Assembly: GCA_002269645.1 (NCBI GenBank)
Contig: NIVC01002426.1
Span: 62,001 to 126,000, forward strand
Length of the DNA stretch: 64,000 bases
Reading direction: 5' to 3'
Source: Macrostomum lignano
Taxonomy: Eukaryota
This document shows, piece after piece, positions 9,001 to 12,000 of this stretch. The first letter of the stretch is position 1. Each line of letters opens with the position of its first letter. Made by a program: the position numbers and the translations under genes. The notes under the pieces were generated by a model, which worked only from the letters and a program-made list of their open reading frames with translations, made no database searches and had not been told where the DNA came from.

Positions 9001-12000
9001 ATCCTCTGCTTCTGGGCCACTGCAGTCACCCTCCCAGATCCTCTGCTTCTGGGCCACTGCAGTCACCCTCCCAGGTCCTCAGCTGCTGGGCCACTGCAGT
9101 CACCCTCCCAGATCCTCTGCTTCTGGGCCACTGCAGTCACCCTCCCAGGTCCTCAGCTGCTGGGCCAGCGCTGTAACCCTCTCAGATGACAGTTCGGACT
9201 CCTTCAACAATCAAAAAAGTTACTCAGTGGGTCTCTCTGCTCTTTCTATCGATAGATGACTCAACCATGATCGGAGATTTCGATTCCAAATACAGCAACT
9301 ACTACTGTTATCGAATATTCATCCGCTGTCACGAGACGCTTGCAGACTCGATGACTCACCTCGGCGCTCTGCGGGATTAAGGGAAAGGGGGGGGGGAATA
9401 GAAAAAGTGTAGATTTATTGCATCAGGTTAGTAACTGCATGGCCTAAAACAAACGACTTCTGCATCGAATTATGGCATAAATTAGCAAGGCGTTGACCCC
9501 TGGAGGTCTGGACTTCCGCGGTTGAGTACTGCTCTTTCTATTTTCCTTTCCTATTTAGTTTTCGTCTTGTTACTCTGAGTCTCTTTCTGGTTTTGAGTCT
9601 TCTGCTTTTTTTGCTCTCTAGCAGTCTCGAGGACCGCGGGACAGAGAGGGAAATTAAAGGTGCGGTGACTCATACAAGATAAAATGAATGTGTTCGTTAA
9701 TCATCGAGCTATGATTAATGTACTCCGGTATTTCAATTCTCACGTATCAGTTTTATCAAACGGACTGATTCACAAGTCATCAAAGCGGTCACCATTAAAC
9801 TTCTTTCAATCCATCCGTTGATGATTAAGTTAAATAATCAGACAGAAACCGTCTTTTAGAACGATTCCAGGCTGTTTAATTTTTAATTTTACTATAAGAT
9901 TCAATAAGATTTTTGTATCCTACTTTGTATTGTATTATATCGATCTAAAAATAGATGAACACGTGAGGCTTTGCAAGCTTCAATTGGAAAAGATGGAAAT
10001 TCGACGAGAGTTAGCTATTTTGGTGTCCTGGACTAACCTCCCTTAGGTAAAGTCGATGTCAGTGACGCACCTTCATATCCAATGACCTTAGTCTCTCTGC
10101 CTTTCTCACCTTTTTTCAAAGCCCTCCCGTTGCGCAAAGGCATAAAGCAAACAGGGGCGGAGGCGCTGCACTACAAATTCAAATTGCATTTCTATTTTCT
10201 ACACTGGCCAGGTCCAGCTATCTCAAAACCAGCCCTATCTTACTTTCTCAGCCGCGTGTTACTAAAATTAGAAACACAACCGGACCGACCGACAGCCCCA
10301 ACCTCCCTGGGCGACGCCTCTCCTCCCCCTCTGCCCAGACAGCCAACCCCGTCCTATGCTCAGCGGCGCAATATGGACAGGAAGGAGAGAAAAGGGTGGA
10401 GCTTGCATAGGACTGGCTGAGGCACGAGTACTGAGCCCCACACACGCCCCACACACACCCAACACTGCTCTTCCCCTCGAACAACGTTAAAAAACTGGGC
10501 GTCGCAACCAAAAATCGACTAAAACTAACTGGCCTATATATTAACAACAGACTCCATCGGTCCCAAAAGAATTTTCTCCAATTCAACTGGACTATGCCTG
10601 CCTGCATGAGCATCTGCGTTGCAGCCAGTGGCCAGTTTCAGGCGTCGCAGCAGGTTTCCCCGTCCGACAGATTTTCGTCCAACGCCGTCAGCCCTAGGCG
10701 ACCAGCGTTGATGCTGGTCGACAATCGGAGCCAGCCGGCCGCCAACGATCCGGAGGTCCCGATCGGCAATTCATCTTCGACTTCTTCGGATTTCGCCGCG
10801 GCAGGCTGTTGCGTCATCGGCGGCCGAGTCCGTCTTCGTCCTGAAGCTGCCTACGTTCAACTTGGCGACGTTGACGCCCCAGGAGCCCGGTGCGTGCGCA
10901 TTGTGCACATCGGCGACTCGTTCTACCGAAAGCGTCGGGGTGGAACTGCTGTTGAACTGGCGGGTCGGATACCAGACGGAGACGTGCTGGTGCACTCCGG
11001 CGGAGACTTCGGCTCCGACGGTGGCTTCAGCAGAGACAATGGCAACACCAGGGCGAGCCTCAGAGACCGTTTTGGCAGCATTCTCAGTCCACTGCTGAGA
11101 CAGCGCAAGCTGCACCAGCTGCGCGACCTGCTGTCGGCGCTGCCGCACCGGCACAAAATCTTGGTGCCCGCTTGCGACACAAACGTCGGCCAGAGAGATG
11201 TTCAACAGCTGCTTGGCTCTGCTTGCCACTGCTTGCGGAATTCCTCCGTGACTCTGGAAGGTGTCACCTTCTACGGGATGTCGTCGGCAAAACCAACCGA
11301 GGATGAACTGTCAGCGGAACTGGAGTCAGTCGACGTGCTGGTGTCGCACTGTCCACCGCGGGACCAGGAGCTTGCCCGCGAAGTATTTCAGAGAATCCGG
11401 TAAGTACTTCTATGAAAGACTTCTATTTACCGTTTTGGTTTGACCATTTATCTAATGCACGGAAATACCCCAATTCTTTATTCCAGTCCAAAGGCCCTCC
11501 TGCAAGGGCATTCACCGGTCACAGATCTTCACAGCGAGACGCAATGGCAGGACGGCGTTCTGCTCTGCAACGACCACCAACTAGCTAACAGGGACAAAGA
11601 GGCCACGGCTGTTGGGAAAAGAGAATTCAACAAGCCGGTAGTTATCGATTTTTACACCTGTCGACCAATGAGCGGCATCAGCCAGGAGTACTCGGAGGTG
11701 ATGCGGTCAGTTGGCTGCAAGCAGAATCGCTCGAAAAAGCAATCAAAGCACTCTGAATGCAACCTGTTGTAATTCAGAAATGCTCTTCCGAATGCAACTC
11801 GAAAGAGAAGAACAGGATTTCTCCTCTCTAATTGATTCATAACTCACGAGCTTTTACACAGTGCTATATGGTATATCATGCTTAAGTATACTTTCGACCG
11901 CTTATGACTTCATGTGCAGGCAGGCACCGCTTCGAAAAATCAGTCAGCCCATTAACCATCCACCATCAGCTACAAACTGCTGGCTTTTGTGCATTTTGTT

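Follow-up and report, generated by a model that had tools for sequence, protein, structure and literature searches.

A candidate membrane-tethered pseudo-phosphodiesterase of the MPPED family encoded within a kinesin intron of Macrostomum lignano

The physiological substrates and the cellular location of the MPPED proteins, a conserved group of phosphodiesterases expressed in the brain, are unclear (PMC10547211). A gene of this family with an altered active site was found in a stretch of 64,000 nucleotides from the flatworm Macrostomum lignano (GenBank assembly GCA_002269645.1, contig NIVC01002426.1, positions 62,001 to 126,000 of the forward strand; hereafter the window, numbered from its first letter), where it lies in antisense within an intron of a kinesin gene. 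An earlier note, made from the letters of the window, had described its product as a probable prenylated pseudo-phosphoesterase. The reading that we favour, with modest confidence, is that of a functional, transcribed and membrane-tethered pseudo-phosphodiesterase, a paralogue within the MPPED/UPF0046 family that resides in an intron of a KIF1A-type kinesin gene.

The gene and its transcript

The coding sequence (CDS) of the MPPED-like gene comprises 10594-11399 and 11487-11772 on the + strand, and after splicing yields 1092 nt that encode 363 amino acids. The scan for open reading frames (ORFs) recovered an ORF of 10594-11403 on this strand, and without splicing the frame ends immediately after the first exon, at the TAA of 11401-11403. 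The splice donor reads CCG/GTAAGT (11399/11400) and the acceptor, which is pyrimidine-rich and ends in CAG, reads TTTATTCCAG before a T (11486/11487). The gene is composed as follows.

10535..10540, + strand: TATATA, 59 nt 5' of the ATG; possibly a promoter element of the gene's own, judged on sequence only
10594..11399, + strand: exon 1, residues 1-268 and 2 nt of the codon for Arg269; motifs I-IV, preceded by an N-terminal extension of around 85 amino acids that is predicted to be disordered
11400..11486, + strand: intron of 87 nt, phase 2, GTAAGT...CCAG
11487..11772, + strand: exon 2, coding for residues 269-363 and ending with the stop codon; it contributes motif V, the final beta-strands, the tail and the CaaX box

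An ATTAAA is present 3' of the gene, at 12102. The spliced product has the same sequence as BOX15_Mlig021091g3/g4 (P0026), a hypothetical protein of M. lignano in GenBank, and differs from BOX15_Mlig021091g1/g2 (P0001) at one position only (Q170R). The gene itself is therefore already known, by its prior annotation as a hypothetical protein. The GenBank annotation of M. lignano was built from a genome-guided RNA-seq transcriptome assembly (PMC5730564), and the gene model, including the 11399/11487 junction that the earlier note had put forward, therefore rests on transcripts. A literature search for Mlig021091 or for MPPED in flatworms gave nothing relevant.

The exon junction falls within a conserved R-I-R-P / ALLxGH block that is shared with the M. 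lignano paralogue Mlig006851 (P0006). The intron, of phase 2, splits the codon that precedes the Pro of R-I-R-P, and the identical codon and phase are found in a relative from the tapeworm Hymenolepis (locus L003). In addition, many partial, exon-truncated relatives stop at ...R(I/V)(R/K/Q), i.e. at the site of this intron, and the family gene structure, with an intron before the Pro of R-I-x-P, is present in the window gene. The opposite-strand ORFs that overlap the gene (e.g. 10771-11229, - strand) were considered as exons of the host and dropped, because all homology was found on the + strand. An alternative start, MGCC, had also been suggested, downstream of a possible acceptor at 10803-10804. 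An exon after this AG begins at 10805 and continues in frame +1, to give MAVASS... and a stop at 11098, and the proposed start therefore does not exist. The spliced leader of M. lignano ends in ATG and its acceptors show YTNCAG (PMC8629364); the AG of 10803-10804 sits in GCGGCAG, without this motif, and a trans-spliced MGCC start was rejected as well.

Family membership and fold

A Pfam scan of the single window protein returned no family, Metallophos included, even at E <= 10, and a phmmer search of the PDB with the same sequence gave no match. In fact, the protein fails the gathering score of PF00149, which P0006 matches at 1.6e-12. Since the single-sequence Pfam and PDB searches came out empty, the family assignment needed profiles. 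The hhalign comparison of the window protein with a profile of active relatives reached a probability of 99.7% (E 5e-27, residues 90-326), and the family profile matches the structure of rat MPPED2 (3RL4) at E 2e-59, with 3RL3, 3RL4 and 3RL5 all at around 1e-59. Of the searches with HMMER and HHpred that had been recommended beforehand, the one for a Metallophos match was negative and the one for an MPPED profile positive. The window protein is a member of the MPPED/UPF0046 family (class III metallophosphodiesterases), as the earlier note had supposed.

A phmmer search of 1.8 billion representatives recovered only 21 relatives at E <= 1e-3. The hits at E 1e-13 to 1e-4 all belong to this family, and those that were checked carried a Pfam Metallophos domain or a UPF0046 name. 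The closest relative is the M. lignano paralogue P0006, a protein of 237 amino acids with 45% identity, in which all motifs are intact and a CaaX box is absent. In the AlphaFold2 model of the window protein, the core (residues 86-330) mostly has a predicted local distance difference test score (pLDDT) of 80-93; residues 1-76 and 354-363 (pLDDT <50) and also 140-161 are predicted to be disordered, and residues 331-350 score 57-61. The best Foldseek matches of this model were the MPPED2 structures 3RL4, 3RL3 and 3RL5 (E 7e-9 to 3.5e-8, probability 1.0), followed by Dbr1, purple acid phosphatase and Vps29. According to the model, the window protein keeps the beta-sandwich metallophosphoesterase fold of the superfamily.

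A degenerate active site

The five motifs of the family are all discernible, in the order and with the degenerate readings that the earlier note had given, now verified in window coordinates.

10906..10923, + strand: motif I, HIGDSF against HISDTH in the family; Asp108 is kept and the metal-binding His is replaced by Phe110
10993..11010, + strand: motif II, HSGGDF against HSGDF in the family; the bridging Asp138 is present after one extra Gly
11167..11181, + strand: motif III, PACDT against (A/P)GNH(E/D) in the family; Cys194 stands in place of Asn and Asp195 in place of the catalytic His
11341..11358, + strand: motif IV, VSHCPP against (T/S)HxPP in the family; His252 is kept
11506..11517, + strand: motif V, GHSP against GHxH in the family; the first His277 is kept and the second His is replaced by Pro279

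The canonical set of residues (D-x-H, G-D, G-N-H-(D/E), H, G-H-x-H) is thus incomplete, with four of the eight replaced. The extra Gly of motif II is an addition to the earlier readings and makes the register of the bridging Asp uncertain. The replacements were placed in the context of the family by a motif table and alignment of 167 relatives. The motif I His column contains His in 128, Arg in 26 and Phe in 2 of these, and the Phe is found only in the window gene. The motif III Asn column contains Asn in 136 and Cys in 26 (24 neodermatan sequences and the two alleles of the window gene), and the adjacent His column His in 137, Trp in 24 and Asp in 2, where again the Asp is confined to the window gene.

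In the scheme that holds for Rv0805 and MPPED2, metal 1 is bound by the Asp and His of motif I, the Asp of motif II and the second His of motif V, and metal 2 by the Asp of motif II, the Asn of motif III, the His of motif IV and the first His of motif V; the His of motif III acts in catalysis throughout the superfamily. On this scheme, two of the four site 1 ligands are replaced in the window protein (by Phe110 and Pro279), and possible ligands stand at every position of site 2 (Asp138, Cys194, His252, His277). For the motif I pair, a role of both Asp and His as metal ligands was established in dMpped and MPPED2 (PMC10547211). Given that the first metal site and the general-acid His are gone, we infer that the canonical two-metal phosphodiesterase chemistry has been lost and that such work is impossible for the window protein. 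As the ligand positions of the second site are all occupied, a one-metal site may have been retained, and the qualification 'dead', as originally given, may be too strong. A degenerate state that retains one half-site appears to be new.

A CaaX box at the C-terminus

The C-terminal end that had been read as a basic patch followed by CNLL was confirmed.

11719..11748, + strand: basic patch upstream of the CaaX box
11758..11772, + strand: CaaX box CNLL and stop, C360-N-L-L363 followed by TAA at 11770-11772

The sequence CNLL has the form of a CaaX box, with Cys at -4, an aliphatic a2 and a stop codon directly after X, and the linker in front of it is basic and predicted to be disordered by AlphaFold2. 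A Leu at position X directs modification by geranylgeranyltransferase I (GGTase-I), so CNLL points to this enzyme.

The search for relatives that keep such a box, which the earlier note had advised, could be made on the 93 complete C-termini among the 167 members collected. A Cys occurred at exactly -4 in 18 of the 93, where around 2 would be expected (Cys frequency 2%), an enrichment of around 9-fold, although the count is partly redundant and corresponds to around 13 distinct 90% clusters from at least four subfamilies. The other end positions contained 0-2 Cys residues, except for -3 with 6, which derive from CC pairs. The boxes include CNLI (Helobdella), CTLL, CTIL, CAIL and CLIC in a leech/spiralian group, CLVM, CTLM and CTIQ in a group with a Cys-rich insert, CVIC in Capsaspora, and CCLQ, CRLQ and CSLQ in tapeworms, and most of the relatives concerned carry KK, RK or RR a few residues upstream of the Cys. 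Considering the enrichment at -4 across subfamilies, CNLL is, by these alignments, an inherited feature of the family and not a chance ending. The box would then not be peculiar to the window protein but recur across non-vertebrate MPPED-like proteins, and this recurrence appears to be new; a search of the literature on MPPED proteins together with prenylation, CaaX or farnesyl found no such link. We infer that the window protein would be prenylated and anchored by its lipid.

Within the leech/spiralian sequences, the Helobdella robusta protein P0125 and two close relatives (P0122 and P0156) read HSGGFF in motif II, with the bridging Asp replaced by Gly; their other motifs are intact and the two complete ones end in CNLI and CTLL. 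This Helobdella-type lineage is partly degenerate in its motifs and, from its endings, probably prenylated.

Selection on the coding sequence

The window gene was compared with two further genomic copies from assembly GCA_002269645.1 (L001 and L002). Over the 1092 nt of the CDS these copies differ from the window by 7 substitutions, of which 6 are synonymous and 1 is non-synonymous (Q170R), a 6:1 excess with a Fisher p of 0.0012. The divergence between copies amounted to 0.64% in the CDS, 1.6-1.9% in the flanks and 4.6% (4/87) in the intron, so that flanks and intron have diverged 2.5 to 7 times more than the CDS (p = 0.008 for CDS versus flanks). None of the four annotated copies has an interrupted ORF. 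The C-terminal tail does not vary between copies, which moreover are identical over 10531-10829, a stretch that covers the putative TATA (10535) and codons 1-78. Upstream, around 150 nt 5' of the ATG, an 11-bp CA-rich indel (GCCCCACACAC, 10435-10445) separates the window copy from L001 and L002.

A ratio of non-synonymous to synonymous change (dN/dS) of about 1 had been named beforehand as the mark of a pseudogene; the 6 synonymous changes against 1 non-synonymous change (p ~0.001) instead argue for purifying selection and not for a decaying pseudogene. The combination by which a pseudoenzyme is recognised, catalytic residues lost and purifying selection kept, is what the comparison of the copies suggests for the window gene, in a small sample.

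Degenerate relatives in parasitic flatworms

The profile search recovered MPPED-like proteins from tapeworms (Hymenolepis, Anoplocephala, Echinococcus, Mesocestoides, Taenia, Hydatigera, Rodentolepis) and from flukes (Schistosoma, Trichobilharzia, Opisthorchis, Fasciolopsis, Echinostoma). These proteins (P0009, P0030 and P0036-P0055; locus L003, 10001-16283) are 490-760 amino acids in length with long inserts, and invariably read HISDTR, HSGDF, GCW(D/E), (S/T)HMPAW and CGHDF; none of them had a precomputed Pfam match. Examples are A0A564Y165 from Hymenolepis, an E. multilocularis protein labelled 'metallophosphoesterase domain containing protein' and Schistosoma proteins labelled 'UPF0046-like'. 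The same four residues are gone in this parasite clade as in the window protein: the His of motif I, both the Asn and the His of motif III, and the second motif V His. Both share the Asn-to-Cys replacement, which takes two nucleotide changes, the resulting Asp-Cys-His-His half-site, a short segment between motifs IV and V, and, for Hymenolepis, the phase-2 intron. The CaaX ending is shared with tapeworms, where it was found in 3 of the 3 complete, uninterrupted models. The two differ in the replacing residues, which are Arg, Trp and Phe in the parasites and Phe, Asp and Pro in the window protein, and in length, the latter having only 363 amino acids.

A neighbour-joining tree with 300 bootstraps grouped the window protein with the parasite clade in 7% and with the active paralogue of M. 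lignano in 34% of the replicates; the branch of the window protein is very long and is drawn to the outgroup. The tree does not join the two, which may therefore have degenerated in parallel or may share a common origin. The presence of a parallel degenerate state in parasitic flatworms appears to be new. An intact MPPED-like protein from tapeworms or flukes did not appear in these searches, and the degenerate form may therefore be the sole member of the family there.

Some endings within the clade deviate. The Echinococcus multilocularis protein P0037 reads ...NNACCMH and then continues for around 60 residues, possibly as a result of a gene-model error, and the Schistosoma proteins P0045 and P0046 end in ECTIHD or ECIIHD, with the Cys at -5, which suggests a disabled or displaced box in flukes.

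What the protein may do

On the preferred reading, the Cys of CNLL would be geranylgeranylated after translation by GGTase-I, -NLL would be removed and the Cys methylated, and the lipid and the basic tail would together keep the protein at membranes, on their cytosolic side. Without the first metal site and the general-acid His it would lack the canonical two-metal phosphodiesterase function, and Asp138, Cys194, His252 and His277 would probably keep one, Zn-like, metal and a ligand pocket. Tethered to membranes, the protein would then serve in binding or regulation and not in the hydrolysis of cyclic nucleotides, with the intact paralogue Mlig006851, which has no CaaX box, supplying the canonical activity. 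It may act as a scaffold or nucleotide sensor, as the earlier note had it. Several points weigh against the proposal. Cys194 and Asp195 are possible metal ligands and could allow some residual hydrolysis; Asn at a1 is tolerated in CaaX boxes without being a usual residue there; the AlphaFold2 model has a mean pLDDT of 67; and the test of selection rests on 7 substitutions and, since L001 and L002 do not differ in their CDS, on a single comparison. Furthermore, an orthologue from another Macrostomum species was found in neither of the two protein libraries searched, so that long-term conservation of the window gene is not documented.

Three other explanations were considered. The protein could be an active, membrane-bound hydrolase with a remodelled site, in which Cys194 and Asp195 serve as ligand and acid, with one metal or an unusual pair and a changed substrate. 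All of D138, C194, H252 and H277 are able to bind metal, the strict conservation of Asp-Cys-His-His in the tapeworm/fluke clade suggests that the site is in use, and purifying selection is consistent with this as well. We nevertheless regard it as unlikely, given the loss of the general-acid His of GNH (Asp here, Trp in the parasites) and the replacement of two of the four site 1 ligands (Phe and Pro here, Arg and Phe in the parasites); in addition, 3RL5 is a deposited mutant structure of MPPED2 with a parasite-like His-to-Arg change, and the domain is no longer recognised by Pfam. About as doubtful, to our mind, is a functional but soluble protein like mammalian MPPED1/2, whose CNLL is not used by prenyltransferases. 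The literature search gave no experimental prenylation of any MPPED-family protein, Asn at a1 is uncommon, and P0006 and many relatives do without a CaaX box. Against this stands the enrichment of Cys at exactly -4 across several subfamilies, and the fact that the aliphatic a2, an X that is L, I, M, Q or C, the upstream basic residues and the variable linkers together form the usual anatomy of a prenylated tail, next to the near-identical CNLI box in the leech relative.

A transcribed, functionless duplicate in slow decay, with CNLL as an inherited relic, we hold to be very improbable. The degenerate catalytic motifs, the failing Pfam match, the lack of a close orthologue from other species in the databases and the very long branch in the tree would all agree with decay. 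Yet at 45% identity to P0006 an unconstrained sequence would be expected to have gained stops or frameshifts and the ORF is intact in every annotated copy (4/4), the fold-determining blocks are conserved, and the synonymous excess (6:1, p = 0.001) and the 2.5 to 7 times lower divergence of the CDS are at odds with the absence of function. A bolder reading, to which we assign a rather low probability, would be a single ancient flatworm invention, in which the MPPED fold was turned from a two-metal hydrolase into a lipid-anchored, one-metal Asp-Cys-His-His site with a new activity or with a role in metal, redox or nucleotide sensing, conserved from free-living Macrostomorpha to Schistosoma and Echinococcus and absent from the vertebrate hosts. 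Separately, prenylation would be an ancestral and so far unnoticed trait of the MPPED family, which Capsaspora already shows and which those vertebrate members that have been investigated no longer have.

The host kinesin gene and the remainder of the window

Five kinesin motor exons were found on the - strand, at 17802-18287, 16849-16965, 14092-14232, 8642-8710 and 7302-7487. Taken together, these exons match the Kinesin (E 1e-107) and Kinesin_assoc families of Pfam, and their best structure match is KIF1A (E 4e-159, versus 6e-124 for KIF13B). By this motor domain, the host of the nested gene is a KIF1A/unc-104-type kinesin-3. The complete MPPED-like gene (10594-11772, + strand) lies on the opposite strand within one host intron, which is bordered by the following exons.

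14092..14232, - strand: host KIF1A-like kinesin exon (switch II), upstream of the host intron
8642..8710, - strand: host kinesin exon (FIPYRDS), downstream of the host intron

The nested antisense position in a neuronal-type kinesin gene, as initially described, thus stands. The arrangement is identical in the genomic copies L001 and L002 (flanks around 97% identical). No kinesin exons were found within 10 kb of the Hymenolepis gene (L003), the one relative examined. The nesting looks lineage-specific and is probably incidental.

The region 7302-18287 (- strand) encodes the KIF1A/unc-104-type kinesin-3 motor domain in at least 5 exons, with long, repeat-rich introns. Tandem-repeat tracts produce spurious long ORFs in several frames, also within the kinesin introns, and in the tract of 6371-6745, which has a 16-bp period, the copy number varies between genomic copies.

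5402-5731, 6307-6846, 7725-8247, 14263-14787, 15973-16506: long tandem-repeat tracts, part 1
37733-38217, 39006-39473, 40277-41168, 41935-42888, 43327-43982, 54428-55776: long tandem-repeat tracts, part 2

Elsewhere in the window, an ORF series around 30681-37874 (+ strand) resembles exons of the importin-beta family; one of these ORFs matches TPR_IMB1 weakly (E 2e-6), without reaching the gathering score. The Lys/Ser-rich ORF of 537 amino acids at 50630-52243 (+ strand) matches Pfam CDC27 (DNA polymerase delta subunit 3; E 2.6e-7) and ends in QTSLTSFF, which resembles a C-terminal PIP box. Exons of the splicing factor PRP3 are located at 57070-57882 and 59071-59388 (+ strand; Pfam PRP3 8e-50, Prp3_C 2e-26), and an ORF of 149 amino acids at 62075-62524 (- strand) resembles a fragment of a retroelement polymerase, with no Pfam match at E <= 0.001.

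Significance and comparison with known systems

If the CaaX boxes are used, much of the non-vertebrate MPPED family would work at membranes, which would redirect the search for its substrates. The degenerate flatworm proteins would be the second natural case, after Vps29, in which the fold is reused without the two-metal chemistry. From tapeworms and flukes these searches recovered the degenerate form and no other member of the family, and as a parasite-specific protein it merits characterisation. Transgenesis and RNA interference are available for M. lignano, so the predictions can be tested directly.

The nearest known systems are mammalian MPPED2 and MPPED1 and Drosophila dMpped (CG16717), which belong to the same family by profile and fold and have the same order of the five motifs as the window protein. 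Apart from one natural change in MPPED2 their metal ligands are complete, whereas four of the eight canonical residues are missing from the window protein. Their substrates include cAMP, cGMP and 2',3'-cAMP, and the motifs of the window protein argue against such activity in its canonical form. Only the window protein has the disordered N-terminus of 85 amino acids and the CaaX ending; the chain of rat MPPED2 aligns up to residue 293 of 296, i.e. to within three residues of its C-terminus. Both dMpped and MPPED1/2 are expressed in neurons (PMC10547211). Together with the neuronal type of the host kinesin, KIF1A, this makes for a loose neuronal link.

Vps29, a subunit of retromer, is the textbook example of a 'dead' member of the superfamily that works on membranes, where the metallophosphoesterase fold serves as a non-catalytic scaffold. 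It belongs to another family, is not prenylated and gains access to membranes via retromer, so that the resemblance is one of principle only. For the tail, the parallel is with PDE6 alpha/beta, CNPase and PRL/PTP4A (CCIQ/CCVQ), whose phosphoester-handling domains are attached to membranes by a C-terminal CaaX box that follows a basic stretch, and we take the CCLQ of Hymenolepis to resemble the PRL boxes. These three are active enzymes with unrelated folds (an HD domain, a 2H phosphoesterase and a PTP, respectively).

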